Shown here: in pieces, positions 2,028-45,746 of the stretch | Layout of the letters: every line of letters starts with the position of its first letter | Position numbering within the stretch: position 1 is the stretch's first letter | Assembly (NCBI GenBank): GCA_002269645.1 | Contig: NIVC01000862.1 | Location: 62,001-126,000, forward strand | From: Macrostomum lignano | Lineage: Eukaryota | Length of the DNA: 64,000 nt | Direction: 5' to 3' | The notes under the pieces: generated by a model | The model's database searches: none | Seen by the model: only the letters and a program-made list of their open reading frames with translations | What the model was told of the DNA's origin: nothing | Position numbers and translations under genes: made by a program

Positions 2028-4548
2028 ACTGTTCTTCAATGCTATGCGGACAGTACGCTTTCTGCACAGTAGCACCGGGGTCCTACAACTGCACCTGCAT
2101 CGATGGATTTCAAGGCAACGGGACAGATAATTGCACCGGTAAATGAGAAATGCGGTTACTTGTAACTTCGCTTATGCTTGTATGAAATCGGTCATACCCT
2201 GTATTTAATTAAAGATGTCAACGAGTGTCTCAGCAGCTCCAAATGCGATGCCAATGCCGACTGCATCAACCTGATCGGCTCATTTGATTGCATTTGCAAG
2301 CCGGGTTACTATGGCAACGGGACTGTCTGTTATCGTGAGTTGACATGATATCTTCGTATTATAACTTGACTGAAGTCGCTCCAAGTTGTCTCAATCCCGG
2401 ATGTATTTTGCAGCTCAGATGCTCCTACCGACAGTAAATGCAACCAATATCTCGGACTATGACATTGTGCACGCATCAGATGGCGTTCCATTTCTGATTG
2501 GAAGTCACGAAAGTTCGTTTTTTCGAGTGGGTCCATCTGAATTTGCGTACAGATTTTAAATGTATCTGCGAATTAACAGTGCTTCTTAGAGCTTGGGAGA
2601 AAGTACTCTTAACTCAAATCAGTCCTTTGTTGCGCTTAAAGACTTATTCATTACCTTGAAATGGAAAAATATCAACAGGTCATTGACTACGGAGCAGTGA
2701 GTTTCTCTGCTTGTCATCTGTGGTATTACCCAGACAGTGACATCGTGGTCAGGGCCAACTGTACTGGAGCCGTCGTGGCGCCTTACTGGTTCGATAATTC
2801 TCGTACCTACGGCAGTTGGACTCCAAAGGTGTACTACGAGCTGCTGAATTCGAGGAACCACAGCTCCTGGTCGAACTGGCGCGCGGTCAAGCAGATCATT
2901 GAGCAGGAAATTCGATCTGAGTTCAACCCTCTGACGGCGCTCATCGTGACTTGGCGCATTCTGACGCCGTCACTGCCGTCACAGAGCTATTGGAATCGAT
3001 TCAACTGCGTCAGAAACTGTAGTTCTAGGCCTTGGAACGAGACGAACGGCTACATCGACCTCTGCCGGGGCCTGTGTTCTCGAGCCGAGGCAAATGCTGT
3101 AAGTGGAGAATCTCTTTGAAGTGACAGTTCTCTTGCCAATGACCATAATCTGCACTTCTTGCTGGCAATGACCTGCAGATGCAAATAAATACGAGTAACC
3201 TACTTACTAAAGCCGACACTGGCCGCATGGGTTAGTAACGCATACTATAGGATTCTAGCAACTTAAATGATAAACCGCGGCATCAAACAATTTCTAAAAT
3301 GATTGTAAGGAAAAAATACTAAAAACTAATTGCACTTTTTATGCACTTTTTAGTTGCTTTGCGAAAGCAATTAGGTATCATATTTAAATTAGATTTATTT
3401 CATTAGGATCTGACGATAGCCGGAAATGCTAAGTCCAACCGAAGCAACTACGAGCTAGTTACGATTTTTTTCGTCTTTAGACATCTGATCGCAAACCAAG
3501 CTTTTCAGCTCTTCCTCCTACAACCGCTCACTACGCGGAATTTCAGAGCATCGAGTTCCAAGCAGTTGTAACGCGCAACGAGACTCACTCATACGCCATT
3601 TTCAACTTCGGCGATTTCCACTCGCCTGTGCCGAGAATCTTCAACTTGAGCTCTCAAAAGTGGGACCTAAAGGCATTCTCAGGATTCACGGATATTATAT
3701 TCGTTCAAAAGCAGCTGCCGTTCAGCCTGCGCCCAGACTGGCCCGAGCTGCCCAACCTGAGTCCTGGAAGTTCGGGAAGACCCGGACGTCACGTGCTGCA
3801 GCTCAGCATCGGGCACGGGGGTGCACCTGAGTGCGGCAGTTGGATCGCAGCCGCCAGAGCCAACCAGAGCAGCTCTGACTTTCCAGGCTGCTCCGACTGT
3901 CCCTTCGATTTTCGCACGGCAGTCCTTGACAGGCGGTTCAGTCCGTACGAGCTTGAGTGCTCTGGTGGCAGCATCCGGATGTGCTTCCGCAAAAGCAGCT
4001 ACCAGTGCGCTCAGAGCTTCACAGGAAGCAGTGCGAGCGGTTGTAAGCCGGAAAATTCCTGGAGATGCATAAGCTACTGCCGTCACCTGGTGTCGACCAG
4101 GTGCTGCTACAGAATGTCATCGGCAGCTGCTGGAAGCGAAATCAGTCAGCTGTGCCGTAATAGTCATGCCGTCGGCTTTGTGGGAGATGTTATGCGACGG
4201 ATTATGTCCAACATGCGATCCAGTGAGTCAGAACATGAGCATTGAAGAGTTGAATAACCTGATAACCTGTTAACCTGATAGCAAAATATAATTGTTTTAA
4301 TCCATGGAATTAAAAAGCAGCATTTTTTGCAGCTGGCCCCCTCATCAGCAGCAGCTCAGATGGTGCCGGACACGCAATGTACTTCTATCGGCGCAGCACG
4401 AATGATAGTCTTTTTTTTGGCTTCTGGTCTCTACAGTATCAAAATGAATTGAACGGTCTAAGAGTCTGCTCATCGGCCGGAATGATCTCCGCTTATTCGG
4501 CAGTAAGACCCATGTGCACCAGCCAGCACTACCAGCCACCAGCCGGAA
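2028..4548 (+). CDS. Module A of MUC4/SUSD2/Mesh-like gene: EGF, cbEGF, NIDO, AMOP exons (no VWD of its own)
   Basis: Inferred GT-AG exons 2028-2138, 2215-2334 (DVNEC...CKPGYYGNGTVC), 2414-2526, 2679-3098 (AVVAPYWFD), 3481-4222 (FQAVVTRNETHSYAIFN; CPFDFRTAVLDRRF; RCCY), 4333-4548 (RPMCTSQHYQPP). Splice phases are consistent throughout. Confidence 0.8.
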
Positions 4549-4750
4549 GTAAGTGCCTTTTCTGCTTGATCTGTTGCTCTTACTATCATGTTTGAGTACT
4601 TTAATAACTTATTTACTCTTGGCTGCTATGTGGCGGCTCAACAGCTTTAGATCATTTAACGTAGCAAACGTTGACATAAAGTTCTTGATACTCTGGTCAC
4701 TTAATTGAATTGTTTTAGCTGCAGTGTTGGTTTTAAATCCTCCTCCTGCC

Positions 4751-6642
4751 TAACCAGAATCCATAATTTGTCTGTTCCCGACTTCTTGGTAAGCAGTGCT
4801 TACCATAGATATTTTCTGGCATAGCATGTCACTTCCATTCCTGCCGGCTAGGCATACTGATCTAGCTTGGCTCAAACTGACGCGCTAGACGGGAAGGAAA
4901 TGAACAGCACTACTGCTTTAGCCAATAAAACAGTTTCACTTGCTGCCTGCTTGGTATGCGCTGCTTACCATAGAAATCTGTGCTCAGACAGCAAGTCCCC
5001 TTTTTAGTAAAACTAGCTTTTTTTACAGTAACACTCTTACCATCTTGTTTGTTAGCCTTTTCTCGCTAAATTTGACACAGTATTTACTCACTGATATCCT
5101 AAAGTACATGGCTTCTGCCTCTGAGATCGACTACATGACCTCTGACAGTGAAGCAAGCCTCGACTCCTACTTAACAATAGACGAGGAGCCTGGCGAGGAG
5201 GTTGGCGAAGAAGCACTGGATGGCAATCCTCCAACCATAGAAGGGCCTGACGGCAAGGAAGAACAGGAGTTTGCAGATGGCGATGCTGCTGAAGTTGAGA
5301 ATGTTTGGCGACTTGTCGAGCCTGGGTCCGATGAAGGGACAGAATGTTTTGAATTTACCGGAACTGCTGGCCTCAATTGACACCTGGTTTACATCATACA
5401 GGTTGTCCCAGTTCCTTATCGACCATTCAACGTTCTTGACGGGCACCGTGAGGCCAGACCGAGGAGTTCCGGCTCAGCTTCGGCAGGCTTTAGTGGTTCC
5501 GAATAATGTAGCTTTTGCGAGGAAGGGACGTGTTTTGATTGTGAAGGCTGTCGAGAGAAAGCAGAGTGGAGTCAGGACCTTGTATTTGCTGGACACGAAG
5601 GACGTTGCGTCAAAGGCAGAGAAAGTCAAGATCAATCGAGCTGGTCAGCATGTGGCAGTGCAGAAGAGCCGCAGTGTGATAACTTACAATCGCTGCATGG
5701 ACACGCTGGACGGCACCCTGCAGCCGGCAGAAAAACAAAAAAATGGTTCCACAAGCTGGGTTTGCATATGTGCCTTCAAATGGTGCGCAACGCTTGGGTT
5801 CTGTACTGCAAGTGTGGTGGCCAGAATACTTTTATCAGATACGAGCGTATCTCGAAGCCAGCATCCGTGATTTGATAGAGCGAACTGGAAATGGCAGGAA
5901 GCGACCGGCTTCCATGCTGCAAACAGTTGCAGTCCCTGAGCAGCATTTTCCGGAGAAAATCCCAGGTCGTCCTACCCAGCCCAGACCTACGAAAAGGTGC
6001 AGAATGTGCTACAGTTCTGCCAGTTCCCGGCGCACAGTTTATTTCTGCAGCCGATGTCCAAGATGCCCGGGACTTTGTTTGTTAGATTGCTTCCAACGCT
6101 GACATTCGCAGCGTTAAAGTACGAGCATCGGCAGAATGGACTCATTTTCCGCTAAAACTAAAGTTTTCATCCTTTCTGTTTACTGTTTTTGGCTCTTGTC
6201 TTTAGCTCATATTAGTTCCCAACTCTTGATAATTTATATTAGTTTCACTAGTTATAGTTTCTGTAGTGCACGAGCCGTACGCTCTGTATGCGCAGTAAGT
6301 TCGATCAGCCAGAATATTATCAGGTTTTCATTCTCGTTTTTGTTGTTTAACACTGTTATTAGTAAATTCGATTTCAAACTTTATTGAAGCCTCTTCGAAC
6401 AAAATGTGTGTTTTTGAACCAAAGCACAAAGGAACGTTACTGAGGAAACGATTAAGAATGTAGAATACAAAGCCTATAATTGTCAGAAAACAAGAAAACC
6501 TAGAATACTCATGGTAAGCAGTGCTTACCATATCCGGCAAGAACGGATACTACCAATTTAGCCATAGAATTTAATTTACTCTGGTCGGCAGAAAGTTGAG
6601 TTGGGCCATGGTAAGCACTGCTTACCATCAGTCTTCTCGTGG
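4751..6642 (+). mobile_element. Internally deleted piggyBac-like DNA transposon
   Basis: Right end ...CTCGTGG followed by TTAA (6643-6646). Sub-terminal palindrome TGGTAAGCA(G/C)TGCTTACCA at both ends. Transposase remnants inside. Left end imperfect (CTAACC rather than TTAACC), so the left boundary is approximate. Confidence 0.8.
5108..6102 (+). pseudogene. piggyBac (PGBD4-like) transposase remnant
   Basis: Acidic N-terminus (MASASEIDYMTSDSE...), DTWFTS...GTVRPDRGVP motif, YNRCMDTLD, and C-terminal Cys-rich domain (RCRMCY...CSRCPRCPGLC). Split over three frames by deletions. Confidence 0.85.
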
Positions 6643-6853
6643 TTAAGGACAAATATTAAGCATTTGGTTCCAACTGTCAGTGACTCAGAAAGACTTTCCT
6701 TGATTTTATCGCAATTACAACGCGTATTTGGTATATAATATTCAAAACCAGCAAAATCTTAAGTTATGTTCATACAGTGATTTGGCGTGACCTGTGACTA
6801 TTTTTGTGCGTAATAAACTCCGCTAATTTGTCCATAAACTCTAAAAACATCAG

Positions 6854-9800
6854 ACTGTTCTTCAATGCTATGCGGACAGTACGCTTTCTGCACAGTAGCA
6901 CCGGGGTCCTACAACTGCACCTGCATCGATGGATTTCAAGGCAACGGGACAGATAATTGCACCGGTAAATGAGAAATGCGGTTACTTGTAACTTCGCTTA
7001 TGCTTGTATGAAATCGGTCATACCCTGTATTTAATTAAAGATGTCAACGAGTGTCTCAGCAGCTCCAAATGCGATGCCAATGCCGACTGCATCAACCTGA
7101 TCGGCTCATTTGATTGCATTTGCAAGCCGGGTTACTATGGCAACGGGACTGTCTGTTATCGTGAGTTGACATGATATCTTCGTATTATAACTTGACTGAA
7201 GTCGCTCCAAGTTGTCTCAATCCCGGATGTATTTTGCAGCTCAGATGCTCCTACCGACAGTAAATGCAACCAATATCTCGGACTATGACATTGTGCACGC
7301 ATCAGATGGCGTTCCATTTCTGATTGGAAGTCACGAAAGTTCGTCTTTTCAAGTGAGTCCAGTTCCGCAACATCTGACATTGTGTACAGAGTTGAACTTT
7401 ACGAGCGTAACTTTGAATTAAAAGTTGCTTCTATGAGCTTAGGCAAAATCAGCTCACATTAACTCCATTATGCTTTGAATTTTTCTGTTCATCTAATGTT
7501 TAAAAAATCTCAACACCCAGGTCAGTAACTTCGGCGCCATCAGTTTCTCTGTGTATCTGAGGTATTTACCATACAACTCCATCACGGCCAAGATCAACTT
7601 TCCTGGAGCTGTCGTGGCGCCTTACTTGTTCGTTAAGCCTACTCCCCACTACTACCGAAGCGACTGGACTCCAAAGGTGTGCTACGAGCTGCTGAATTCA
7701 AGTAACCACAGCTCCAGCTCGAACTGGCGAGCGGTCAAGCAGATCATTGAGCAGGAGATTCGATCCGAGTTCAACCCTCTGACTGCGCTCATCGTCACTT
7801 GGCACATTCTGACGCCATCACTGCCGTGGCAGAGCTATCGGAATCGATTCGACTGCGTTTCGAAATGTTATTCTAACCAAACCTGGAACGAGACGAACGG
7901 CTACATCGACCTCTGCCGGGGCCTGTGTTCCCGAGCCGAGGCAAATGCTGTAAGTGGAAAAGTGTCTGCAAAATAGCAGAGCTCATTTTATCGACCATAA
8001 TTTACACTTTAATTCGCTTGCGATGACCTGCAGATTGAAAAATATCGTAGTTACTAAGGCCGGCCCTATTGGTTTGTAGCGCATCTCCGAGGATTCCTGC
8101 AACTCAAATGTTAAACCGGCATCAATAGACGCAGTTTTTAAGCAACTGGCACACGTGGTTTAGAATTTCAACTTTTAACTGAAGTTGCCATGAAAAAAGA
8201 GGGACACCAGAATATCAAAATGTTCTTTTTCTCGTCAAAAATCAACAGGTTTGCATGAACCTTTTAAATAATGGCTTTGTAACCGGTTCCCAGTGGCTGA
8301 TTAGCTCTTTAGGAGTTTAGGTGCAAGGGCTTATTAGATATTTCATGGCAAAGCCGAGAGTTATCTACTCGTAGCAAAATCAATTACGTCTAACAGTTGA
8401 ATTTTCTTTCTTTCAGGAAGATCTGCCACCCGGGAATGTAAAGACTTAGCAGTATCTGATAATTAAAATGAAAAAGAATGATGCGAGAATGTCAAAACGA
8501 AACAAGAAACTACGAATTTAGCGTTTGTAGATATTTTTATAATCTACGAGCGTAATCCCAAACCAGGCTTTTCAGCTCTTTCTCATACAGCTGCTTTCTG
8601 CATGCAATTTCAGAGCATCGAGTTCCAAGCAGTTGTAACGCGCAACGAGACTCACTCATACGCCATATTTAACTACGGTGACTTCCACCTGCCTGTGCCG
8701 AGAATCTTCAACCCGAGCTCTCAAATATGGGAGCTGAAGGCATTCTCAGGATTCACGGATAATTTATTCGTTCAAGAAGAGCTGTCATTGAGCCTGAGCC
8801 CGGACTGGCCCGAGCTGCCCAACCTGAGCCCCGGAAGTTCGGGAAGACCCGGACGTCACGTGCTCCAGCTCAGCATCGAGCAAAATGGTACATCTGAGTG
8901 CGGCAGTTGGATCGCAGCCGCCAGAGCCAACCAGAGCAGCTCTGTCTTTCCAGGCTGCTCCGACTGCCCTACTGATTTTCGCACGGCAGTCCTTGACAGG
9001 CGGTACAGTCCGTACGAGCTTGAGTGCTCCGGTGACAGCATCCGGATGTGCTTCAGCAACACCAGCTACCAGTGCGTTCAGAGCTTCACAGGCAGCAGTG
9101 CGAGCGGTTGTAAGCCGGAAAATTCCTGGAGATGCGAGCTTGAGAACTGCCGTCACCTGGTGTCGACTAGGTGCTGCTACAGAATGTCATCGACAGATGC
9201 TGGTAGCAAAATCAGTCAGCTGTGCCGTAGAAGTCAGTCCCTCGGGAAGGTGAGAGCTGTCCTGCGATGGATCATGTTCGACATGCCACCCAGTGAGTCA
9301 GAAATCAAGCATTGAAGAGTTGAATAAGTTGAAGCTGATTCAAACGTTATCAAGTTTTAGTTCACTAAATACAAACCAACATCATTTGCAGCTGGCCACC
9401 TCATCAGCAGAAGCTCAGACGGCGCCGGACACGTAAGGTACTTCTATCGGAACAGCACGAATGATAGCATTCAATTTGGTTTCGGGTCTCCACAGTATAA
9501 AAATGAATTGTACGGCCTAAAAGTCTGCTCAGCGGCCGGAATGATGGCCGCTTATTCTACCGTAAGACCCATGTGCACCAGCGAGAACTACCAGCCACCA
9601 CCACCAGGTAACTGCTTTGATTGAACTGAAGGTCTGAGTACACATTTTGAGTAGTTGAATAATTTATTCACTCTTGGCTGCTCCCTCACGGCTCAACTGC
9701 TTTTGGTCATTTTCAAGCATTGTAACCAACACCTTAAGCAATTAAGCATAAAAAACTTAAGCAACTAAGCACCAAACCAAAACCTGAGCAACTAAGCATC

Positions 9801-12800
9801 AAACCAAAACCTGAGCAACTGAGCATCAAACCAAAACCTGAGCAACTAAGCATCAAACCAAAACCTAAGCAACTAAGCATCAAACCAAAACCTGAGCAAC
9901 TAAGCATCAAACCAAAACCTGAGCAACTAAGCATCAAACCAAAACCTGAGCAACTAAGCATCAAACCAAAACCTGAGCAACTAAGCATCAAACCAAAACC
10001 TGAGCAACTAAGCATCAAACCAAAACCTGAGCAACTAAGCATCAAACCAAAACCTAAGCAACTAAGCATCAAACCAAAACCTGAGCAACTAAGCATCAAA
10101 CCAAAACCTGAGCAACTAAGCATCAAACCAAAACCTAAGCAACTAAGCATTAAACCGAAATCTTGAGCAACTAAGCATCAAACCAAAACCTCAGCAACTA
10201 AGCATCAAACCAAAACCTAAGCAACTAAGCATTAAACCGAAATCCTGAGCAACTAAGCATCAAACCAAAACCTGAGCAACTAAGCATCAAACCAAAACCT
10301 GAGCAACTAAGCATCAAACCAAAATCCTGAGCAACTAAGCATCAAACCAAAATCCTGAGCAACTAAGCATCAAACCAAAATCCTGAGCAACTAAGCATCA
10401 AACCAAAATCCTGAGCAACTAAGCATCAAACCAAAACCTAACCAACTAAGCACCAAACCAAAAAACCAACTTCCGATCTCCAGCCTTCAACCGAGGCGAC
10501 CCTCACCTAAGCACGCTCTCGAACCGCACCTACACATTCAACGGTCACTGCGAGTACCACCTGCTCACCAGCGAGCGGTGGCTGGACTCACCGACGCTGC
10601 GGCTGCAAGCGCGCACCGCGCCAGTCAGCGGTGGAGGCGCCACGGCCTTCGTCGGCGTCGCGCTGAAGTCCGGCCTCAACGAGCTGGCCGTGTCGGTGAT
10701 GCGCAACGAAAGCTCCGACGACCTCGACGTCTTCAGCAGCGACGGACGTCGGATCGGCAGCGTCAGGGGCGAGCTGGCGGCGCTGAGCAACGCGACCAGA
10801 CTGGACAGCTACCGGCTGGAGGTCCCCGACAACAGCACCATCGACATTGTCGACGAGTCTACCGGCGTCAGTGTCACCGTTACCATGGAGACGAGCTCGC
10901 TCAGAGTCGGCGTTCAACTGGACTTAGAAGGAAAATACCCGAGCGGACTGGACGGGTTGCTAGGCAACAGCAATGCGAGCGGATTCAGACTGAGAAACGG
11001 CAGCGTCCTGCCAGCTAACAGCTCCGAGAGGCAGCTGTTTGAGTTCGGGAACAGCTGGAGACTCAACAGCTCAGAGCCGAGCTACCTGCACTACCCGGCT
11101 GGCAAGGGCCGAGCTGACTTCTGCGATCCCAGCTTCGAGCCGGCCTTTGCCGAGGACTTCAAGGACAACATGCTGGCGCTGTTCGGCGGGAACGCGGGGC
11201 TCAAGAACGCTTCGGAAGAGGTGAGTAGAGAGGATGGGTAGAAGTTAAGAAGTCCCAATGTGAAACTAGAGTACCTGGAAGGAAGTGACAACAAAATGAC
11301 ATTGAATGTGACCTGGTGTAGATTCATAAGGTCCGCTGACCCTTGAAAGGAAAGGTTCCTGTGAGACGGTCATGATCCCATTCTGCTAACGAACTAAAAA
11401 ATTTTAATTCGGTAAAATAGCGCTGAAATCTCGACCTTCGTGAGATGGCTCTTCGATTTCCTGAACAAATGAATAGGTGACCCAATCGAGAAGCACCCTT
11501 GATACCCTCCTTAATAAGGAAGTTGAAAGTTGTTGCATTTCAGGCTAAACATCGTGCATGGATCCCTCACTGCTGTCGCTCTGCCCTGGCAGGTGTGCCG
11601 CAGCTCCGGCTCCTCCTACCTCACCTGCATGTTCGACGCCGCTCAGCTTCGCTCGGTCGCAGCCGCTCAAGACGCGGCCGTCGCCATTCGAGACGAGACT
11701 CGAACCCGGGTCGTCCTGGCCAACCGACCACCGCAGTTCGTGAGCGCCCCGAGCCAGCTGCGAGTGAACGGCAGCAACAGCGTCGGTGTCACCTTCTCCG
11801 TGACGGATCCCGACGGCGCCTCACCGAATGTCACCGTGCTGGAGGCCGTCGGGGGGACCGCGAAGCTAGAGGCTGGGACCAGCAGCAGCTGGCAGCTCGT
11901 GTGGCAGCCCGTCGACAACTGGCAAGGCGACATCAAACTGCAGCTGGTGGCGGTGGACGAGGTCGGAGCCGTCACGGTGTGGACTCCCAGGATTGTGGTG
12001 TGCGACTGCGGGAGCAGGGGCAGCTGCTGCCCTGACTGCGGCATTGCTGACGACACGGGTGAGTAGCTGACTGACTGACTGACTGACTGACTGACTGACT
12101 GACTGACTGACTGACTGACTGACTGACTGACTGACTGACTGACTGACTGACTGACTGACTGACTGACTGACTGACTGACTGACTGACTGACTGACTGACT
12201 GACTGACTGACTGACTGACTGACTGACTGACTGACTGACTGACTGACTGACTGACTGACTGACTGACTGACTGACTGACTGACTGACTGACTGACTGACT
12301 GACTGACTGACTGACTGACTGACTGACTGACTGACTGACTGACTGACTGACTGACTGACTGACTGACTGACTGACTGACTGACTGACTGACTGACTGACT
12401 GACTGACTGACTGACTGACTGACTGACTGACTGACTGACTGACTGACTGACTGACTGACTGACTGACTGACTGACTGACTGACTGACTGACTGACTGACT
12501 GACTGACTGACTGACTGACTGACTGACTGACTGACTGACTGACTCACTGACTCACTGACTCACCCCCTCACCCGTAACCATTGCAGCTTACTATCACCGT
12601 GAAGAGTGCAAGTGCGATCTGGGATTCACGGGACCCCAGTGCGAGCAGGCAGTGAAAATCTGTCTGACATCTGACTGCCAGGAGCCGCAGGGTGAGCAGC
12701 TGCTCAGTAATTTACCAGATTGCAAGTTGTTCGAGAAACTAAACAAATTATTTTCCTAAACTCTCCGCTTCAGACAAAGGGGATGAAGAGGATGGCAGAG

Positions 12801-12922
12801 TCGATGACAGGTGGTCAGGAGTTTTCAGGGTGGGCAGGTCGGTGCACGGGAGGTCCGCCTTTACCGCCACTGTCGGTGCCGTGACGTCACTGGTGCTTCT
12901 GTCGGCACGGCTAATAAACTGA
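6854..12922 (+). CDS. Copy B of MUC4/SUSD2/Mesh-like gene: EGF-cbEGF-NIDO-AMOP-VWD-cadherin/Ig-like-EGF-hydrophobic C-terminus (probable GPI signal)
   Basis: Inferred exons 6854-6964, 7041-7160, 7240-7352, 7521-7949, ~8551-9292, 9392-9607, 10484-11220 (GDPHLSTLSNRTYTFNGHCEY = VWD start), 11593-12058 (NRPPQF...FSVTDPDG), 12587-12691 (CKCDLGFTGPQC), 12774-12922 (...SAFTATVGAVTSLVLLSARLIN*). Phases match; no in-frame stop seen. Confidence 0.85.
9762..10465. repeat. 27-bp intronic minisatellite (CTAAGCATCAAACCAAAACCTGAGCAA)n
   Basis: Direct tandem units with occasional 28-bp variants, lying between the AMOP and VWD exons. Confidence 0.95.
12067..12560. repeat. (GACT)n microsatellite, intronic
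   Basis: About 490 bp of near-perfect GACT just after the GTGAGT donor at 12059. Confidence 0.98.
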
Positions 12923-13136
12923 GCGACGCTTTGATCTAGAATGAAAAATTGAAAAACTTACGAAAAGAAAATACTGTGTGAAGTTGCTTTAATCACACTC
13001 AGTGTGTTCCATATTTATCCAGATTACTCTGCACATGTTTATTACATTAATTTAATTTTTATTCAGCTCCTACCAGTGTTATCAAAAACGAAAAAAATCC
13101 TTTTTAGTGAAGATTCAGGGACGGTTGAAGTACAAA

Positions 13137-13483
13137 CATAGATCGTATATTCTCCAGATGGGCCTAGAATTCCTATGCAGTTTGCCAGCAATTTTCGGAA
13201 TGTTAAAACGTTTCTTCAAGTTTGCTGCTTGTTTGTTTTCTTTCTTTTTGTTACTGTTTTTTGCTTGCTTTTCAATCGCAGTAGTTTATCCTTCATTTGT
13301 TTGTTTCAACGGTTTTTTAACCCAGGCGACTGCGTCATGGCACAAAAAGGCATGCACTTATCGCTCAAGCTACTGAACTTAAACTATAGGTAGACGTGGT
13401 TGCTAAAGCTTTCACGAAATACATTAGGGTCTCTAGGGGCGCCTAAGTACACGGAGGCCCATCTAGAGAATGTATGATCTATG
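13137..13483. mobile_element. MITE-like remnant with 29-bp imperfect inverted repeats
   Basis: CATAGATCGTATATTCTCCAGATGGGCCT (13137-13165) versus AGGCCCATCTAGAGAATGTATGATCTATG (13455-13483), 3 mismatches. No TSD identified. Confidence 0.45.
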
Positions 13484-14165: not shown

Positions 14166-14305
14166 CTTCTAAAAGGGCTATTCTACAGCAAGGGCTACTC
14201 AGTTAAAAATTCTATAACAGCAATGGCCCGCTTAGTTATTAACTACATGGCAACAATTGCCCTATACTCGTCTTACTGTATCATAGAGTACTACAGCTTA
14301 CAAAG

Positions 14306-21612: not shown

Positions 21613-21614
21613 GT

Positions 21615-29350: not shown

Positions 29351-29435
29351 ATGAAACCAAACATTGCTTCAGTCGCTGGAGACTTCGGCTGGCAACTACT
29401 GTGTCTGTTTCTGCTTGTCGATGCGGGAAGCTGCG
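29351..29435 (+). CDS. Candidate first coding exon (signal peptide) of copy C
   Basis: AGCAAC-ATG; MKPNIASVAGDFGWQLLCLFLLVDAGSC, then G|GTGAG donor (phase 1). Upstream acceptor-like TTTTTTCTTTGAAACTTGCAG at 29332. Conserved at 53695. Confidence 0.55.
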
Positions 29436-34900: not shown

Positions 34901-37132
34901 TCCACCCAGATAAGCACTAGTCCCACCCAGATAAGCATCACTCCCACCCAGATAAGCAACACTCCCACCCAAATAAGCATCACTCCCACCCAGATAAGCA
35001 ACACTCCCACCCAGATAAGCATCACTCCCACCCAGATAAGCATCACTCCCACCCAGATAAGCAACACTCCCACCCAGATAAGCAACACCTCCACCCTGAT
35101 AAGCACTACTCCCACCCAGATAAGCAACACCTCCACCCAGATAAGCATCACCTCCACCCAGATAAGCATCTGCACTCCCACCCAGATAAGCATCACTCCC
35201 ACCCAGATAAGCATCACTCCCACCCAGATAAGCAACACTTCCACCCTGATAAGCACTACTCCCACCCAGATAAGCAACACTTCCACCCTGATAAGCACTA
35301 CTCCCACCCAGATAAGCAACACTTCCACCCAGATAAGCACTACTCCCACCCAGATAAGCAACACTTCCACCCAGATAAGCACTACTCTCATCCAGATAAG
35401 CAACACTTCCACCCAGATAAGCACTAGTCCCACCCAGATAAGCATCACTCCCACCCAGATAAGCATCACTCCCACCCAGATAAGCATCACTCCCACCCAG
35501 ATAAGCACCACTCCCACCCAGATAAGCATCACTCCCACCCAGATAAGCAACACTCCCACCCAAATAAGCATCACTCCCACCCAGATAAGCAACACTCCCA
35601 CCCAGATAAGCATCACTCCCACCCAGATAAGCAACACTCCCACCCAGATAAGCAACACCTCCACCCTGATAAGCACTACTCCCACCCAGATAAGCATCAC
35701 CTCCACCCAGATAAGCATCTGCACTCCCACCCAGATAAGCATCACTCCCACCCAGATAAGCATCACTCCCACCCAGATAAGCATCTGCACTCCCACCCAG
35801 ATAAGCACTACTCCCACCCAGATAAGCATCACTCCCACCCAGATAAGCACCACTCCCACCCAGATAAGCATCACTCCCACCCAGATAAGCAACACTCCCA
35901 CCCAAATAAGCATCACTCCCACCCAGATAAGCAACACTCCCACCCAGATAAGCATCACTCCCACCCAGATAAGCATCACTCCCACCCAGATAAGCAACAC
36001 TTCCACCCAGATAAGCACTACTCCCACCCAGATAGGCAACACTTCCACCCAGATAAGCACTACTCTCATCCAGATAAGCAACACTTCCACCCAGATAAGC
36101 ACTAGTCCCACCCAGATAAGCATCACTCCCACCCAGATAAGCATCACTCCCACCCAGATAAGCATCACTCCCACCCAGATAAGCAACACTCCCACCCAGA
36201 TAAGCAACACCTCCACCCTGATAAGCAACACTCCCACCCAAATAAGCATCACTCCCACCCAGATAAGCAACACTCCCACCCAGATAAGCATCACTCCCAC
36301 CCAGATAAGCATCACTCCCACCCAGATAAGCAACACTCCCACCCAGATAAGCAACACCTCCACCCTGATAAGCACTACTCCCACCCAGATAAGCATCACC
36401 TCCACCCAGATAAGCATCTGCACTCCCACCCAGATAAGCATCACTCCCACCCAGATAAGCATCACTCACACCCAGATAAGCAACACTTCCACCCTGATAA
36501 GCACTACTCCCACCCAGATAAGCAACACTTCCACCCTGATAAGCACTACTCCCACCCAGATAAGCAACACTTCCACCCTGATAAGCACTACTCCCACCCA
36601 GATAAGCAACACTTCCACCCAGATAAGCACTACTCCCATCCAGATAAGCAACACTTCCACCCAGATAAGCACTAGTCCCACCCAGATAAGCATCACTCCC
36701 ACCCAGATAAGCAACACTCCCACCCAAATAAGCATCACTCCCACTCAGATAAGCAACACTCCCACCCAGATAAGCATCACTCCCACCCAGATAAGCATCA
36801 CTCCCACCCAGATAAGCAACACCTCCACCCTGATAAGCACTACTCCCACCCAGATAAGCATCACCTCCACCCAGATAAGCATCTGCACTCCCACCCAGAT
36901 AAGCATCACTCCCACCCAGATAAGCAACACCTCCACCCTGACAAGCACTACTCCCACCCAGATAAGCAACACTCCCACCCAGATAAGCACTACTCCCACC
37001 CAGATAAGCATCACTTCCACCCAGATAAGCACTACTTCCACCCAGATAAGCAACACCTCCACCCTGATAAGCACTACTCCCACCCAGATAAGCAACACTT
37101 CCACCCAGATAAGCATCTGCACTGCCAAACTG
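31997..37132 (+). repeat. 21/24-bp frame-preserving array (CCCACCCAGATAAGCATCACT)n; candidate giant repeat exon of copy C
   Basis: All units are 21 or 24 nt, with no frameshift over 5.1 kb (the in-register antisense ORF spans it). Preceded by pyrimidine tract + TAG acceptor at 31996. The repeat is certain; exon status is inference. Confidence 0.9.
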
Positions 37133-37337: not shown

Positions 37338-37577
37338 CGAACTGCTCAGCAGTCACCTGCTTCAACGGCGGCAACTGCAACGAGTACACTGCCAGCCCGC
37401 CCTGTCTCTGCCCACTGCCCTACATCGCACCATACTGCGAATCAGCTGCAGACTACTGCTTCACCCTGCAACCTGACAAGGGCATCACTGAGCTGCCTGT
37501 GTGCCTGAATGGCGGCAACTGCACACTGACTTACACAGATCCGTACTTTAATTGCAGCTGTCCCGATGGCTATGCAG
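37338..37577 (+). CDS. Exon encoding two EGF-like domains (upstream part of copy C)
   Basis: CSAVTCFNGGNC...CLCPLPYIAPYC and CLNGGNCT...CSCPDGYAG; TTGCAG acceptor and GTGGGT donor, phase 1-1. Confidence 0.85.
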
Positions 37578-38584
37578 GTGGGTATCTGATATTTCAAAGC
37601 ATTTCCTGTAGCTAACTTTTACGGCATATGATATAGCAAGCAAGCTCTTAAGGATTCAGTCTGAAAGCATATTTAATACTCGCATTTACTGCCAGGAATC
37701 AGGTGCAACAAATTACCGGCAGTCATTCATGTTGGTATGTGTGACACAAATGTTCTTTCTTGACTGACTAACCTGTAATATACTCGTACGACATTAACTG
37801 TTGTTTTGTGCAGTGTAAGAACTCATGGGAAGACTGCTTTACTGAGTGAGTATTGTTTAGCATATATCTATTCATACAAGCTGTTGAAACCCAAAGATAT
37901 TGAAAGCACTTAATTCCAATCACTCAACTTTTTCTCTGTTTAAATACTGTTAAAATATTCTAGAGAAACTAAACAGAATTAAATATGCAGGCCATTAGTT
38001 CTTGCTTGAAGGAAAAGGCAGGTCCGATGCAATTCTATTGCCTTTGCCGGATCCTGTCACGATTGTCTGCCTCAATCACATTCGAGAAGTGTTGCTTGAA
38101 GATTAACCGTAAGATAGATCTGGTGCATTGTAACAAAAATTGGGGGACCAAATTTCGATAAAAAACTTTTTTACGAGCGTACCTTAAGGGCCAGATAAAG
38201 AATACAGCTTATGGCTGTGGGTTTCATGAGAGTGGAAAGGAGGGGTAATGGAAGATTAGAGAAGAGATATGAAATCAGAACAATACGAGCTAGAAGAAGA
38301 GAGAAGAGCGGAGAGAGGAGAAGGGAAGGAGAGACGGAAGAGGGGAGAAAGGAGGAGAAAGGGAGAAAAGTGGAGAGAGGAGAGGAGAGAGGAATCTGGC
38401 GACACTGGAGGGCCTCACTGGCCGGCACCAACCCTTCGTCCATAGCGACGCGTCGGTCGTTCAGGGCCAAGTCGGAGCCTCGAGGGTCAGCGCTTCCACC
38501 CAACTCGGCCCCCTCAGTTGCACGCACAAGCCAAGACAAACAAGGAGACACGTCGGCCACCTCTTTAAGACAAGATTCGGGGCG

Positions 38585-39660
38585 CCACCTTCAATTCCAG
38601 CACTCTCAGTCAGAAATAGAGACTACAGGAGCTGACAAGGCTGGCGGCTGACTTCAACACATTCATCCTGGTAGTTCAAGAACATCGGCGGCAGAACTCT
38701 GGCGAGACTGTGGATCTGGGCCTGAGCCGGCAATTCAGGGCTGCCCCAGCCCCTCCGCAGGGAACTGGAGGCATTGGCTTCCTGGTCTCGCCTGCCGCAT
38801 ACACAGAGCTGCTGGACATCAAGTTCCCATCCGAGCGCCTGGGACACGCCTCCGCTCTGTGTTTACCTCAGAAACAGCTGACTGGCAGGAAGCCCAGGCC
38901 CAACGCTCCAAATGTGCCTCTCCTGCCAACCAGACTTTGACCCAGCCCAGCCAGGCGCCTTCAACACCGGCTCCATCGCTGCAGGCCAGGGTGGTAGAGC
39001 ACCGAGTACCATGCGAGCTGATGCTGCCGCTGGGGGTGGACGCCATCCCTCCCAGAGTCCTAAAGCTGTCTGAGCTCACCCGATCATCACCAGCCTGCTG
39101 AACTAGCACAGCAGTCTTGGAGGCAACGAGGCTGCCTCAGCTCCTCAGCAATAATTGCACTTCCAAGATTGTCTCCATCCCGAAGAAAGGCCTGGACAAC
39201 CAGTCTGGACAACCAGTCTGGACAACCAGTCTGGACAACCAGTCTGGACAACCAGTCTGGACAACCAGTCTGGACAACCAGTCTGGACAACCAGTCTGGA
39301 CAACCAGTCTGGACAACCAGTCTGGACAACCAGTCTGGACAACCAGTAGGGCATCAAGCTAGAATGCCCAAGTTGCTGAATTCTGCGCAACCGCCTCCTG
39401 CCCGGCCTCAACCCGCTGCTGCTGAGCCTTCAAAGCGGCTTCCGCCCGGGTAGGTCCACCACCGAGCAGGTTGCCACTATCCGCTCTGTCATCGAGGCCT
39501 GCAAGACCCGCCAGCGCTCCGTGTCAATCATCTTCGTCGACTTCCGCAAGGCGTTTGACTTGGTGCCCAGGCCTGCAATCGCGTGGCTCCTATCTCACTA
39601 TGGCGTACCTGCTGCGCTAGTGAGCGCGGTGATGAACCTCGATCGCGACTCCAGGGCCAA
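38585..39660 (+). mobile_element. Degenerate RTE-like non-LTR retrotransposon in an intron of copy C
   Basis: APE start (ATFNSSTL...ELTRLA...VVQEHR; GGIGFLVS) and RT (DAIPPRVLK, TSKIVSIPKKG, IIFVDFRKAFD), with stops and deletions. The 5' UTR may extend to ~38200. Confidence 0.82.
39192..39347. repeat. 13-bp tandem repeat (CTGGACAACCAGT)x12 within RT coding sequence
   Basis: 156 bp = 12 perfect units, between PKKG and RGI motifs. Confidence 0.97.
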
Positions 39661-42644
39661 GAGCGAAGAGCCTTAGCATTTGAGCAACTCCCTCATACGA
39701 TTTAAAATCTAAATTTTCCATGAAAGCTATAACCATAGTCCATAACCTGCAGCTAGCCGAGGAGCAGCATTTCATCAACTCCCTCTCAGCCCAAGAATTT
39801 CAAAACTTAGCAACTAACAGTTTGATATCTTGGAAATTAGTCTTATGGTTCCAAATGTAAATAACTCAGAAAGGTTTTTTTCTTATTTTTAACGCAGATA
39901 CTTGGCGTATAATATTCAAGACCTAAACGAATGTTGCTGTTTATACAGTAAATTAACTTCACCTGCGACTATTTTCGTGCTTTATAAATTCCGCTTAGTT
40001 GTATAAAAACTCAAAAACATAAACGACTGTTTTACAGAGCTATGCGGTCTGTACGCTACCTGCACAGACACGTCGGGGTCCTACAATTGCACCTGCATCG
40101 ATGGAGTTCAAAGCAAAGGAAAGGATAATTGCACCGGTAAATAAAAATTTTCGACTTATATAACTTGTTAAAATGCAGCTACTTGCACATGTAACTTCAC
40201 TTATGCTCGTATGAGATCGGCCATGAACTGAATCCAATTAAATGTCAACAAGTGTCTCAGCAGCTCCAAATGCGATGCCAATGCCGACTCCATTAACCTG
40301 ATCGGCTCATTTGATTGCATTTGCAAGCCAGGTTTCTATGGCAACGGGACTGTCTGCTATCGTGAGTTGACATGACATATCATATATAATTTGACTGAAA
40401 TCGCTCCAGTTGTCTCAATCCCGGATGCATTTTGCAGCTGAGATGCTCCTACCGACAGTAAATGAAACCAATATCACGGACCATGACATTGTCCACGCAC
40501 CACGTGGCGTTCCGTTTCTGATTGGCAGTCAGGAAAGTTCGTCTTTTCAAGTAAGTACCGCTTTGAAACAACTTACTTTTCGTACAGAGTTGAACTGTAA
40601 CTTCGAATTGACAGTTTTTCTGAGAGCTGAAAAAATATTGTTAGAAAAGCCGTAATTAATAAGAATCAACTCCACGATTATCCTTTGAATTTCACTGTTC
40701 ATTTAACATTTAAAAAATCTCAACACCAAGGTCAGTAACTATGGCGCCATCAGTTTCTCTGGGTATCTGTGGTATTTACCATACAACTCCACCACGGCAA
40801 AGGTCAACTTTCCTGGAGTCGTCGTGGCGCCTTACTGGTTTGTTAATCCTCGTACCTACTGGAGAGAACGTTGGACTCCAAAGCTTTCCTACGAGCTGCT
40901 GAATTCGAGAAACCACAGCTCCAGCTCGAACTGGCGCGCGGTCAAGCAGATCATTGAGCAGGAGATTCGATCCAAGTTCAACCCTCTGACGACTCTCATC
41001 GTGACTTGGCGCATTCTGACGCCGTCACTGCCGTGGAAGAGCTATTGGAATGGATTCAACTGCGTCAGAAAATGTTATTCTAGGCCATGGAACCAGACGA
41101 ACGGCTACATCAGCCTTTGTCTGGGCCTGTGTTCTCAAGCCAAGGCGAATGCGGTAAGTGGAGGAATGTCTCTGAAGTGACAGAGTTCTTCCCAATGACC
41201 ATAATATGCGCTTCTTGCTGGCGATGACCCACAGATGCAAATGTATAACGTACTTACTAACAAGCAGCTGTAGTTTAAAGTTTTCACTTTATAACAGAAG
41301 GTTTTTCATAAAAGAAAGAATACCAAAACATCAGAATGTTATTTTATTCTGTAAAAGGTCAACCGTTGTGCATGCACATTTTCATACTTGAGTTAGATTT
41401 ATTCCATGAAGATCTGACGATCCGGGTACATGTATATTAAGTCTTACCGCTGCACCAAATGAAGAAGTCACAGTTTTTTCATAATTAGAAATATGACGTC
41501 AAGTCAAGCTTCTCGGCTCTTTCTCACTCAGCTGATCACTACGTGCAATTCCAGAGCATCGAGTTCCAAGCAGTTGTAACGCGCAACGAGACTCACTCAT
41601 ACGCCATTTTTAACTACGGCGACTTCCACTCGCCTGTGCCGAGAATCTTCAACCCGAGCTCTCAAAAGTGGGACCTGACAGCGTTCTCAGGATTCACGGA
41701 TAATTTTTTCGTTCGAAAAGAGCTCTCATTCAGCCTGCGCACAGACTGGCCCGAGCTGCCCAATCTGAGCCCCGGAAGGTCGGGAAGACCCGGACGTCAC
41801 GTGCTGCAGCTCAGCATCGAGCAAAATGGTACATCTGAGTGCGGCAGTTGGATCGCCAATCAGAGCAGCTCTGACTCTCCAGGCTGCTCCGACTGTCCTT
41901 TCGATTTTCGGACGGCAGTCCTTGACAGGCGGTACAGTCCGTACGAGCTTGAGTGCTCCAGTGACAGCATCCGGATGTGCTTCAGCAACACCAGCTACCA
42001 GTGCGTTCAGAGCTTCACAGGCAGCAGTGCGAGCGGTTGTGAGCCGGAAAATTCCTGGAGATGCGAGCTTGAGAACTGCCGTTACCTGGTGTCGACCAGG
42101 TGCTGCTACAGAATGTCATCGGCAGCTGCTGGCAGCGAGATCAGTCAGCTGTGCCGTAGAAGTCAGTCACTCTGGTATGTGAAAGCTGTCCTGCGATGAA
42201 TCCTGTTCAGCATGTCAACCAGTGAGTCAGAACCTGAGCATTGAATAGTAGAATAAGTTGAAGCTGATTATAAAAATTATCAAGTTCTAATTTACTGAAT
42301 AAAAAATCATCATTTGCAGCTGGCCATCTCATCAGCAGAAGCTCAGACGGCGCCGGACACGTAAGGTACTTCTATCGGAACAGCACGAATGATAGCATTC
42401 AATTTGGTTTCGGGTCTCCACAGTATAAAAATGAATTGTACGGCCTAAAAGTCTGCTCAGCGGCCGGAATGATGGCCGCTTATTCTTCCGTAAGACCCAT
42501 GTGCACCAGCGAGAACTACCTGCCACCAGCGGGAGGTAACTGCTTTGTTGTAACTTTAGCTCTGAGTACCATATTTTGAATAGTTTCAATAATGAATTCA
42601 CTCTTGGCGGCTACTGGTGGCTCAACTGCTGTAGATCACTTACA

Positions 42645-43200
42645 AGCATCAAACCAAAACCTGAGCAACTAAGCATCAAACCAAAACCTAACCAACTAAG
42701 CATCAAACCAAAACCTGAGCAACTAAGCATCAAACCGAAACCTGAGCAACTAAGCATCAAACCAAAACCTGAGCAACTAAGCATCAAACCAAAACCTAAC
42801 CAACTAAGCACCAAACCAAAACCTGAGCAACTAAGCATCAAACCGAAACCTGAGCAACTAAGCATCAAACCAAAACCTGAGCAGCTGAGCATCAAACCAA
42901 AACCTAACCAACTGAGCATCAAACCAAAACCTGAGCAACTGAGCATCAAACCAAAACCTAACCAACTAAGCATCACACCAAAACCTGAGCAACTAAGCGT
43001 CAAACCAAAACCTGAGCAACTAAGCATCAAATCAAAACCTAACCAACTGAGCATCAAACCAAAACCTGAGCAACTGAGCATCAAACCAAAACCTAACCAA
43101 CTAAGCATCACACCAAAACCTGAGCAACTAAGCGTCAAACCAAAACCTGAGCAACTAAGCATAAAATCAAAACCTTAAGCAACTAAGCACCAACCAAACA
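42645..43200. repeat. 27-bp intronic minisatellite (paralog of 9762-10465)
   Basis: Same unit and same intron position. Confidence 0.95.
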
Positions 43201-44810
43201 ACCAACCTCCGATCTCCAGGCTTCAACCGAGGCGACCCCCACCTGAGCACGCTGTCGAACCGCAGCTACACATTCAACGGTCACTGCGAGTACCACCTGC
43301 TCACCAGCGAGCGGTGGCCGAACTCACCAACGCTGCGGCTGCAAGCGCGCACCGCGCCAGTCAGCGGTGGAGGCGCCACGGCCTTCGTCGGCGTCGCGCT
43401 GAAGTCCGGCCTCAACGAGCTGGCCGTGTCGGTGATCCGCAACGAAAGATCCGACGACCTCGACGTCTTCAGCAGCGACGGACGTCGGATCGGCAGCGTC
43501 AGGGGCGAGCTGGCGGCGCTGAGCAACGCGACCAGACTGGACAGCTACCGGCTGGAGGTCCCCGACAACAGCACCATCGACATTGTCGACGAGTCTACCG
43601 GCGTCAGCGTCACCGTTACCATGGAGACGAGCTCGCTCAGAGTCGGCGTTCAACTGGACTTGGCAGGAAAATACCCGAGCGGACTGGACGGTTTGCTAGG
43701 CAACAGCGACGCGAGCGGATTCAGACTGAGAAACGGCAGCGTCCTGCCAGCTGGCAGCTCCGAGAGGCAGCTGTTTGAGTTCGGGAACAGCTGGAGACTC
43801 AACAGCTCAGAGCCGAGCTACCTGCACTACCCGGCTGGCAAGGGCCGAGCTGACTTCTGCGATCTCAGCTTCGTACCGGCCTTTGCCGAGGACTTCAAGG
43901 AAGACCTGCTGGCGCTGTTCGGCGGGAACGCGGAGCTCAAGAACGCTTCGGAAGAGGTGAGTAGAGAGGATGGGTAGAAGTTAAGAAGTCCCAATGTGAA
44001 TCTAGAGTACTTGGAAGGAAGTGACAATAAAATGACATTGAATGTGACCTGGTGTAGATCCATAGGGTCCGCTGACCCTTGAAAGGAAAGGTTCCTGTGA
44101 GACGGTCATTATCCCATTTTGTTAACGAACTTAAAGAACTAAAAATCTCTATTCGATAAGATAGCGCTGAAATCTCGCCCTTCGTGAGATGGCTCTTCGA
44201 TTTCCTGAACAAATGAATAGGTGACCCAATCGAGAAGCACCCTTGATACCCTCCTTAATAAGGAAGTTGAAAGTTGTTGCATTTCAGGCTAAACATCGTG
44301 CATGGATCCCTCACTGCTGTCGCTCTGCCCTGGCAGGTGTGCGGCAGCTCCGGCTCCTCCTACCTCACCTGCATGTTCGACGCCGCTCAGCTTCGCTCGG
44401 TCGCAGCCGCTCAAGACGCGGCCGTCGCCATTCGAGACGAGACTCGAACCCGGGTCGTCCTGGCCAACCGACCACCGCAGTTCGTGAGCGCCCCGAGCCA
44501 GCTGCGAGTGAACGGCAGCAACAGCGTCGGTGTCACCTTCTCCGTGACGGATCCCGACGGCGCCTCACCGAATGTCACCGTGCTGGAGGCCGTCGGGGGG
44601 ACCGCGAAGCTGGAGGCTGGGACCAGCAGCAGCTGGCAGCTCGTGTGGCAGCCCGTCGACAACTGGCAAGGCGACATCAAACTGCAGCTGGTGGCGGTGG
44701 ACGAGGTCGGAGCCGTCACGGTGTGGACTCCCAGGATTGTGGTGTGCGACTGCGGGAGCAGGGGCAGCTGCTGCCCTGACTGCGGCATTGCTGACGACAC
44801 GGGTGAGTAG

Positions 44811-45056
44811 CTAACTGACTGACTGACTGACTGACTGACTGACTGACTGACTGACTGACTGACTGACTGACTGACTGACTGACTGACTGACTGAATGACT
44901 GACTGACTGACTGACTGACTGACTGACTGACTGACTGACTGACTGACTGACTGACTGACTGACTGACTGACTGACTGACTGACTGACTGACTGACTGACT
45001 GACTGCATGACTGACTGACTGACTGACTGACTGACTGACTGACTGACTGACTAACT

Positions 45057-45151
<95 letters not shown>

Positions 45152-45200
45152 TGACTGACTGACTGACTGACTGACTGACTCACTGACTCACTCACTCACC
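44811..45200. repeat. (GACT)n microsatellite (paralog of 12067-12560)
   Basis: Same intron; shorter and with several interruptions. Confidence 0.97.
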
Positions 45201-45746
45201 CCCTCACCCGTAACCATTGAAGCTTACTATAACCGTGAAGAGTGCAAGTGCGATCTGGGATTCACGGGACCCCAGTGCAAGCAGGCAGTGAAAATCTGTC
45301 TGACATCTGACTGCCAGGAGCCGCAGGGTGAGCAGCTGCTCAGTAAATTACCAGATTGCAAGATGTTCGAGAAACTGAACAAATTATTTTCCCAAACTCT
45401 CCGCTTCAGACAAAGGGGATGAAGAGGATGGCAGAGTCGATGACAGGTGGTCAGGAGTTTTCAAGGTGGGCAGGTCGGTGCACGGGAGGTCCGCCTTCAC
45501 CGCCACTGTCGGTGCTGTTTCGTTACTGGTGCTTCTGTCGGCACGGCTAATAAACTGAGCGACGCTTTGATCTAGAATGAAAAAATTGAAAAACTTACGA
45601 GAAAATACTGTGTGAAGTTTCTTTAATTACACTCAGTGTGTTCCATATTTATCCAGATTACACTGCACCTGTTTATTACATTAATTTTATTTTTATTTAC
45701 CTTCCTTCAGTGTTATCAAAAACTAAAAAATCCTTTTGAGTGAAGA

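Follow-up and report, generated by a model that had tools for sequence, protein, structure and literature searches.

Gene content of the window

The stretch of DNA considered here, referred to as the window, comprises 64,000 nucleotides of the Macrostomum lignano genome (assembly GCA_002269645.1, contig NIVC01000862.1, positions 62001-126000). Three genes were located in it, all on the + strand: gene 1, gene 2, and the first exon of gene 3. The results described below make it fairly probable that they are paralogs from the MUC4/"mucin-like protein" family, arranged head to tail, whose products have a putative, diverged AMOP domain and a predicted glycosylphosphatidylinositol (GPI) anchor. Gene models were built using database proteins as guides; GT/AG splice sites were required, and ambiguous junctions were checked on nucleotide alignments. 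An earlier note on this DNA had described a tandem family of related proteins with at least four starts or modules. The ends of the exon-like open frames that it listed proved to be true boundaries: an AG acceptor immediately precedes 2028, and a TGA stop ends at 45558. The tandem array of members of one protein family was recovered as well, but the count was different. NIDO-linker modules were found three times in the window (A, B, and C), and complete 3' ends and signal-peptide exons twice each (the latter at 29351 and 53695). This adds up to two genes plus exon 1 of another one, instead of four genes. A and B are both part of gene 1 and do not represent separate members of the family, and one of the genes looks like a pseudogene.

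Translated exons of the window showed up to 100% identity to predicted M. lignano proteins, and the next best match, a fish "mucin-4", was 26% identical. The deposited proteins P0002 and P0055 matched the gene models at 99-100%, which is far beyond chance. Genes 1 and 3 are deposited in GenBank as the hypothetical proteins PAA75776.1 (P0055) and PAA75777.1 (P0001), respectively. Self-comparison of the window revealed a segmental duplication (6655-16603 versus 40187-51680, 84-97% identity) and a partial further copy of the duplicated region at 1829-4658.

Gene 1 (2028-12922) has 16 exons, all of them with canonical splice sites, and an open frame of 1592 codons. Its product consists of modules A and B, each composed of an EGF, a cbEGF, a NIDO domain, and a cysteine-rich linker of about 200 residues, followed by a VWD domain, an immunoglobulin (Ig)-like unit, an EGF-like repeat, and a hydrophobic tail. 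The first exon found in the window is internal and, therefore, the 5' end of the gene lies upstream. A third similar EGF/NIDO/linker module, preceded by a satellite, was located about 2-7 kb upstream of the window (L002 302-5635, equivalent to window positions -7280 to -1947), so gene 1 may have three modules and further 5' exons beyond the window. The public model of this gene, PAA75776.1, begins at the internal Met at 2419 and leaves out two well-spliced EGF exons located 5' of it (2028-2334).

Gene 2 extends from the signal-peptide exon at 29351 to the stop at 45558, and has a single module (C) and an 8-kb first intron full of satellite. Gene 3 has two modules. The remainder of this gene, past the end of the window, corresponds to P0001/PAA75777.1, and every mappable coding segment was 98.8-100% identical. 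In the public model PAA75777.1 the exon at 29351 is joined to coding exons that are all past the window end, and the first intron spans the whole of gene 2 (L001 10001-62162). The exon copy at 53695 is identical to the copy at 29351 from -235 to +95 around the exon. Since this identical exon is the natural first exon of gene 3, PAA75777.1 looks mis-joined. Both public gene models, PAA75776.1 and PAA75777.1, were flagged for correction. P0056 (UniParc UPI0007A2A68F, 2880 residues) was rejected as a guide because it is a chimeric model with sequence derived from a long interspersed nuclear element (LINE). This older automated model, which is in the 90% cluster of P0001, contains sequence matching a transposon-like open frame of gene 2 intron 3 (38620-38937) and splices from the tail exon into downstream sequence. 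Table 1 shows the coordinates of the exons.

Table 1. Exons of genes 1, 2, and 3 located in the window, with the features they encode.
Feature	Position	Strand	Evidence or remark
Gene 1, EGF, module A	2028..2138	+	AG acceptor, GT donor; 97% identity to P0001 residues 671-707
Gene 1, cbEGF, module A	2215..2334	+	Pfam EGF_CA 38 bits; canonical splice sites
Gene 1, NIDO start, module A	2414..2526	+	Splice sites; PAA75776.1 model begins at Met 2419
Gene 1, NIDO middle, module A	2679..3098	+	Pfam NIDO 42.9 bits; splice sites
Gene 1, NIDO end and Cys-rich AMOP-position linker part 1, module A	3547..4222	+	99% identity to P0002; splice sites
Gene 1, linker part 2, module A	4333..4548	+	Gene model/splice sites
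Gene 1, EGF, module B	6854..6964	+	Gene model/splice sites
Gene 1, cbEGF, module B	7041..7160	+	Gene model/splice sites
Gene 1, NIDO start, module B	7240..7352	+	Gene model/splice sites
Gene 1, NIDO middle, module B	7521..7949	+	Gene model/splice sites
Gene 1, NIDO end and linker part 1, module B	8614..9292	+	Gene model/splice sites
Gene 1, linker part 2, module B	9392..9607	+	Gene model/splice sites
Gene 1, VWD	10484..11220	+	Pfam VWD above cut-off on gene 2 copy of exon; 98.8% identity to P0002, P0055
Gene 1, helix, Ig-like beta-sandwich, and EGF start	11593..12058	+	AlphaFold (AF2) predicted local distance difference test (pLDDT) 81-90 over sandwich; PDB I-set matches; collinear with fish Big_9/He_PIG
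Gene 1, EGF-like	12587..12691	+	Weak EGF_Teneurin match; 100% identity to P0001, P0002, P0055
Gene 1, last exon: acidic stretch, candidate omega site G-R-S, hydrophobic tail, TGA stop	12774..12922	+	Splice sites, hydropathy
Gene 2, exon 1: start codon and signal peptide MKPNIASVAGDFGWQLLCLFLLVDAGSC	29351..29435	+	Borrowed by public gene 3 model
Gene 2, exon 2: two EGF-like repeats	37338..37577	+	Pfam EGF; splice sites
Gene 2, exon 3: short linker	37696..37734	+	Gene model/splice sites
Gene 2, exon 4: EGF	40038..40136	+	Gene model/splice sites
Gene 2, exon 5: cbEGF with lesion	40243..40361	+	ttaaag/ATGTCA in A, B versus ttaaa/TGTCAA in C
Gene 2, exon 6: NIDO start, module C	40438..40550	+	Gene model/splice sites
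Gene 2, exon 7: NIDO middle, module C	40731..41153	+	Pfam scan; splice sites
Gene 2, exon 8: NIDO end and linker part 1, in-frame TGA 42197-42199	41555..42221	+	Copy comparison
Gene 2, exon 9: linker part 2	42320..42535	+	Gene model/splice sites
Gene 2, exon 10: VWD	43220..43956	+	Pfam VWD 34.7 bits
Gene 2, exon 11: Ig-like unit	44337..44802	+	Splice sites, alignment with fish unit
Gene 2, exon 12: EGF-like	45223..45327	+	Gene model/splice sites
Gene 2, last exon: hydrophobic tail and stop	45410..45558	+	Splice sites, hydropathy
Gene 3, exon 1: signal-peptide exon	53695..53779	+	Identical to 29351-29435

Domain composition of the encoded proteins

The NIDO, VWD, and EGF_CA domains named in the earlier note were all detected by Pfam above cut-off (25 bits for NIDO and 22.9 bits for VWD). 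The EGF/EGF_CA matches scored 38-46 bits. NIDO scored 37.2 bits in module C, 42.9 bits in module A, and 69.9 bits over two stretches in P0001, and the VWD domain, of which there is one per protein, scored 34.7 bits in exon 10 of gene 2. The gene models and Pfam matches also confirmed the proposed order EGF-NIDO-(AMOP-position linker)-VWD-Ig-like-EGF-hydrophobic tail. In the cbEGF of the C-type module (window 40243-40361), a conserved Cys is replaced by Ser: this module reads CDANADSINL, whereas A and B read CDANADCINL. The intact gene 3 has this replacement too (P0001 residues 155-197), so modules of this type lack one disulfide of the EGF. The search for a Ser/Thr/Pro mucin region gave a maximum S+T+P content of 34% in any 50 residues and no coding tandem repeat. 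Strictly speaking, the product is no mucin, but it includes 46 N-glycosylation sequons and 77 cysteines.

The unit that follows the VWD domain had been called cadherin/Ig-like, and its signature, NRPPQF...VTDPDG, was found within single exons (11593-12058 and 44337-44802). Of the two names, Ig-like is the one that held. Pfam matches were below threshold (Big_9, 17.9-18.9 bits against a cut-off of 23.6 bits; Cadherin_5, E 0.09; Cadherin_4, E 0.82). The AlphaFold model obtained with an alignment of flatworm and fish sequences consisted of a helix followed by a beta-sandwich (pLDDT 81-90), and its best PDB structure matches were I-set Ig domains such as titin M10 (E 1e-5, TM 0.67). No classical cadherin was found among the best 50 of 87 PDB matches (E<=0.001), which were mostly I-set or other Ig-like domains. 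Thus, the unit is Ig-like, and "cadherin-like" applies in the loose E-set sense only; its D-P-D-G loop resembles the cadherin D-x-D-x-G motif only by eye. The exon is collinear with the Big_9/He_PIG unit of the fish proteins (21-26% identity), and the two N-terminal cysteines as well as the C-x-C...G-x-C start of an EGF are common to both.

The linker located between NIDO and VWD had been identified as AMOP. Its position and a skeleton of residues shared with fish and bird proteins agree with this identification, but direct domain searches using Pfam, a hidden Markov model (HMM), and hhalign do not. The latter results weigh against the AMOP assignment and would be expected if, in this lineage, the AMOP located between NIDO and VWD had been replaced by a cysteine-rich domain unrelated to it. 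The Pfam AMOP model did not match the linker even at E<=10, although it recognized AMOP in the positive control, a fish relative. The probability obtained with hhalign against fish AMOPs was 0.1%, the score with an HMM made from fish AMOPs (hmmsearch --max) was no better than those of shuffles, and gap-tolerant Smith-Waterman alignments of linker and AMOP produced z values of just 0.2-3.5. The AlphaFold model of the linker was of low confidence (pLDDT 56) and too poor for a fold search, and no structure of an AMOP domain was recovered in a sequence search of the PDB. Furthermore, a linker profile compared to 1.84 billion representative proteins matched only four, none of them with a Pfam-recognizable AMOP, and the linker includes 14 cysteines versus 8 in the fish positive-control sequence.

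However, the silence of the Pfam model is weak evidence because the same model misses the genuine MUC4 proteins of birds. One of the four proteins matched by the profile was P0016 (E 2.6e-29), a diverged relative with the same linker. P0016 and bird MUC4 formed one alignment of 812 columns (E 1e-30), in which NIDO, the linker, VWD, the C8-3 region, the Ig-like unit, and EGFs are covered in succession; this collinearity also upheld the kinship to MUC4 proposed in the earlier note. In the joint alignment, 14 columns are invariant in flatworm, bird, and fish (C16, W19, C38-P39, A45, D48, R106-C107, Y109, L150, C192, R205-P206, and Y213), and two flatworm-specific insertions interrupt this skeleton. 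Considering the skeleton shared with fish AMOP and the same location between NIDO and VWD, replacement by an unrelated domain seems unlikely, and the most probable identity of the linker is that of a diverged AMOP domain interrupted by two insertions.

Hydrophobic tail, integrity of gene 2, and growth of the array

As noted before, the proteins end in a hydrophobic tail without cytoplasmic residues: the sequence ...SAFTATVGAVTSLVLLSARLIN followed by the stop ends at 12922, and a near-identical copy ends at 45558. Apart from the signal peptide, the products of genes 1 and 2 and all full-length paralogs have a single hydrophobic window, which covers the last 20 residues and is followed by one more residue. 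A rule-based check of genes 1 and 2, P0001, P0003, P0004, and P0007 identified small-residue omega candidates (G-R-S or A-S-S) at a distance of 23-28 residues from the C-terminus. At the other end, exon 1 of genes 2 and 3 codes for a signal peptide, MKPNIASVAGDFGWQLLCLFLLVDAGSC, with a hydrophobic core. Judging by hydropathy and the omega-site rule, the layout of the tail fits the GPI-attachment signal suggested in the earlier note and probably is one; GPI anchoring itself is predicted from this layout.

A different possibility is that the proteins have a minimal transmembrane anchor that lacks a cytoplasmic tail, or that they are secreted into the matrix. The hydropathy of the tail speaks for the former and against a GPI signal, since it is modest (1.7-2.2 over 19 residues, with one Arg) and reaches the usual threshold for membrane helices; as for the latter, fish relatives such as P0010 are without a membrane anchor in their models. 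Nevertheless, there is only one residue past the hydrophobic window and no basic stop-transfer cluster, and, in spite of the variable sequence of the tail, all paralogs have omega candidates at the appropriate distance. True transmembrane paralogs from the same species are quite different: P0057 (BOX15_Mlig018549g2) and P0058, both M. lignano proteins, and the related P0016 have a strong helix of 23-24 residues and a cytoplasmic tail of 15-20 residues. We therefore regard an anchor of another kind, or none, as improbable, and a GPI-attachment signal remains the preferred interpretation of the tail. A search downstream of either stop for an exon homologous to the helix and tail of the transmembrane paralogs matched only cbEGF exons. 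The F/L-rich open frames about 290 bp past each stop were discarded as exons because they are T-rich, of low complexity, and without homology. The transmembrane helix and cytoplasmic tail present in P0016, P0057, and P0058 point to the tail-less ending as the derived state.

Two lesions weigh against the inclusion of gene 2 among the working members of the array. A deletion of two nucleotides near 40243 costs the cbEGF exon its AG acceptor and one coding base, and there is an in-frame TGA at 42197-42199; this codon is CGG (Arg) in copy A and TGG (Trp) in copy B, and it specifies one or the other of these two residues in the database paralogs. Both lesions are absent from copies A and B and from all database paralogs. 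The ratio of nonsynonymous to synonymous substitution rates (dN/dS) of copy C versus its nearest relative was 0.85, compared to 0.38-0.66 for other pairs. The best identity between a database protein and gene 2 was 89-94%. In-frame rescues by means of cryptic sites (40105/40253 and 42165/42339) were rejected because the EGF and linker exons would be cut at non-homologous points. In the single assembly examined, gene 2 is probably a young pseudogene, i.e., the middle gene of the array would have been recently disabled. Were the lesions assembly errors, all three genes would be intact. The acceptor lesion is a deletion within an A/T-rich run, where long-read assemblies may plausibly have indel errors, and only one assembly was available. 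However, the stop arises by a substitution rather than an indel, the two lesions are independent and are found within one copy, dN/dS is raised for that same copy, and the databases do not include a protein model for gene 2. An error of assembly is thus not a likely cause of the lesions, and the pseudogene interpretation is preferred.

The subfamily found in the window comprises at least five genes at three loci in Macrostomum, in agreement with the lineage-specific expansion proposed earlier. Single-module genes are located elsewhere in the genome (P0004 on NIVC01000695.1 and the P0007 locus on NIVC01002355.1), and neither has a tandem neighbor within 10 kb. Module B is nearest to module 2 of gene 3 (dS 0.04) and module C to module 1 of gene 3 (dS 0.06), while module A is older (dS 0.17-0.24). 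A segment of 707 bases that includes an intron and the first three exons of A and B (1829-2535 versus 6655-7361) is 98.9% identical, and the rest of A and B is about 84% identical. This contrast is indicative of gene conversion that took place recently at the start of these modules, or else of their partial duplication in the very recent past. Together, the relationships among modules and the identity pattern of A and B indicate unequal recombination among modules and genes, and the array probably grew by exchanges of this kind between modules and between whole genes.

An alternative is that the array consists mostly of decaying DNA, that is, pseudogenes without current function left by segmental duplication in a genome that is repeat-rich and was recently duplicated. 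The destroyed acceptor and in-frame stop of gene 2, the dN/dS of its copy C, and the introns filled with satellites and transposon remnants are in line with decay. The constraint is only moderate, as judged by dN/dS values of about 0.5-0.66, and no expression or functional data were found in the literature on the gene identifiers or on Macrostomum with NIDO/AMOP; both points count against active genes. On the other hand, gene 1 keeps its 16 open exons, canonical splice sites, and 1592 codons, the mappable segments of gene 3 are nearly identical to P0001, the dN/dS values of the intact copies are well below that of C, and both intact genes have deposited models. General decay is very unlikely, and genes 1 and 3 are regarded as intact members of the array.

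The regions between exons and between genes are rich in repeats. Very large C-rich satellites, with repeat units of 21 and 42 bp and a GC skew of about -0.6, occupy 32007-37117 and 56279-64000, in the first introns of genes 2 and 3, and yield spurious open reading frames of up to 1698 codons on both strands. Each of them is preceded by a 24-bp satellite (30017-31464 and 54361-55723). The intron located before the VWD exon includes a 27-bp minisatellite (9752-10463 and 42644-43198) with one open frame that reads as KPKPEQLSI repeats; these could be mistaken for a coding mucin-like repeat, but they are spliced out in all models. A (CTGA)n microsatellite of 96-124 copies is found in the intron after the Ig-like exon in both gene copies (12067-12560 and 44814-45196). 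Between genes 1 and 2 there are two different 23-bp satellites, at 17184-21615 (4.4 kb) and 22911-26199 (3.3 kb), the second of which recurs upstream in L001-equivalent sequence. Transposon remnants include an integrase open reading frame (Integrase_H2C2 and rve) from a long terminal repeat (LTR) retrotransposon in the intron 5' of module A (10-1314), a fragment of a piggyBac-type transposase (DDE_Tnp_1_7) in the intron between A and B (4940-6100), a reverse-transcriptase fragment (RVT_1), probably non-LTR (LINE-type), in intron 3 of gene 2 (38200-39700), and a gag-protease-integrase remnant 3' of gene 2 (47598-48986).

Proposed role and comparison with known systems

According to the proposed model, each gene would encode a signal peptide, EGF repeats, one to three modules, one VWD domain, the helix with the Ig-like sandwich, EGF-like repeats, and the tail. 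After secretion, the GPI anchor would replace the hydrophobic tail, and the protein would be displayed on the outer face of the epithelial membrane, as is the case for MUC4, Mesh, or alpha-tectorin, where it could bind or organize surface matrix and be shed by cleavage of the anchor. By analogy with those proteins, the most likely role is that of an apical epithelial surface glycoprotein that binds or organizes extracellular matrix and that could be shed if GPI-anchored.

A bolder proposal, which we consider doubtful although worth stating, is that this is a Macrostomum-specific branch of the MUC4 family in which the transmembrane segment was swapped for a GPI anchor, and the NIDO-AMOP module was multiplied within proteins and within a fast-evolving array, resulting in sheddable multivalent surface proteins. 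Were they multivalent and GPI-anchored, these proteins could be involved in the organization of, or recognition at, apical matrices (epidermal glycocalyx, gut surface, mating or partner recognition). If both the anchoring and the multi-module transcripts were real, the array would be a clear natural case of a switch from transmembrane to GPI anchor in the MUC4 family, as well as an example of how the NIDO-AMOP pair, about which little is understood, can be multiplied inside a protein. Since M. lignano is amenable to transgenesis and RNA interference, it could help find the binding partners of these two domains. In other respects, the array is an ordinary expansion, within one lineage, of a family of extracellular proteins. 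In terms of annotation, the Pfam AMOP model misses diverged members, bird MUC4 included, and the Ig-like unit located after VWD is an old and under-annotated part of the MUC4 family.

The array represents a lineage-specific variant of a known family and not a new kind of protein, and its intact members are already deposited. The earlier note had regarded the EGFs before NIDO and the Ig-like unit after VWD as unusual. This did not hold, because they are also found in the fish "mucin-like protein" and in bird MUC4, and they are, therefore, old features of the family. A GPI-anchored protein with NIDO and VWD is not new either, as alpha-tectorin is already one (PMC6881170). What distinguishes the flatworm proteins is the repetition of the module within one protein, the strongly diverged linker, and the GPI-type tail.

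Among the known systems, insect Mesh, an epithelial surface protein of the smooth septate junction, has extracellular Ig, NIDO, AMOP, and VWD domains (bioRxiv 10.1101/2021.05.07.443077). It differs from the flatworm proteins in its transmembrane anchor, in the set and order of its domains, and in its Sushi/CCP repeats; no Sushi domain was matched in any Pfam scan of the flatworm proteins. Alpha-tectorin (TECTA) is a GPI-anchored protein of apical matrices with NIDO and VWD domains that is released from the surface to organize the matrix (PMC6881170), and it provides a precedent for the anchoring and mode of action proposed here. It differs in its several VWD domains and its ZP domain, whereas the flatworm proteins have a single VWD and no ZP match in Pfam scans, and in the lack of both a domain at the AMOP position and the Ig-like unit.

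Human MUC4 has the NIDO-AMOP-VWD core (PMC9080433, PMC5354666), and bird MUC4 (P0060/P0062) has this core, the C8-3 region, the Ig-like unit, and EGFs in the order seen in the flatworm family, in which the linker occupies the AMOP position. The Pfam C8-3_MUC4 model did not match the flatworm sequence. Compared to MUC4, the genes in the window have EGFs before NIDO and are devoid of the Ser/Thr/Pro repeat, the transmembrane helix, and the cytoplasmic tail. In the fish "mucin-like"/"mucin-4-like" proteins, Pfam identified EGFs, NIDO, AMOP, VWD, a weak C8-3_MUC4, a Big_9/He_PIG Ig-like unit, and EGFs, in this order. These and other mucin-like or MUC4-like proteins (the zebrafish si:ch73-105b23.6 family, fish P0010/P0019, and chiton P0059) have the parts in the same order as the flatworm proteins, which differ in having the EGF-cbEGF-NIDO-linker module two or three times per protein, a linker too diverged for the Pfam AMOP model, and a tail-less hydrophobic stretch at the C-terminus. 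The transmembrane paralogs P0057 and P0058 and the related P0016 belong to the same family. They have the same type of linker and the same NIDO-linker-VWD-Ig-like order as the window genes, but they differ from this subfamily (about 35% identity) in that extra cbEGFs follow the Ig-like unit and the protein ends in a transmembrane helix and a cytoplasmic tail.

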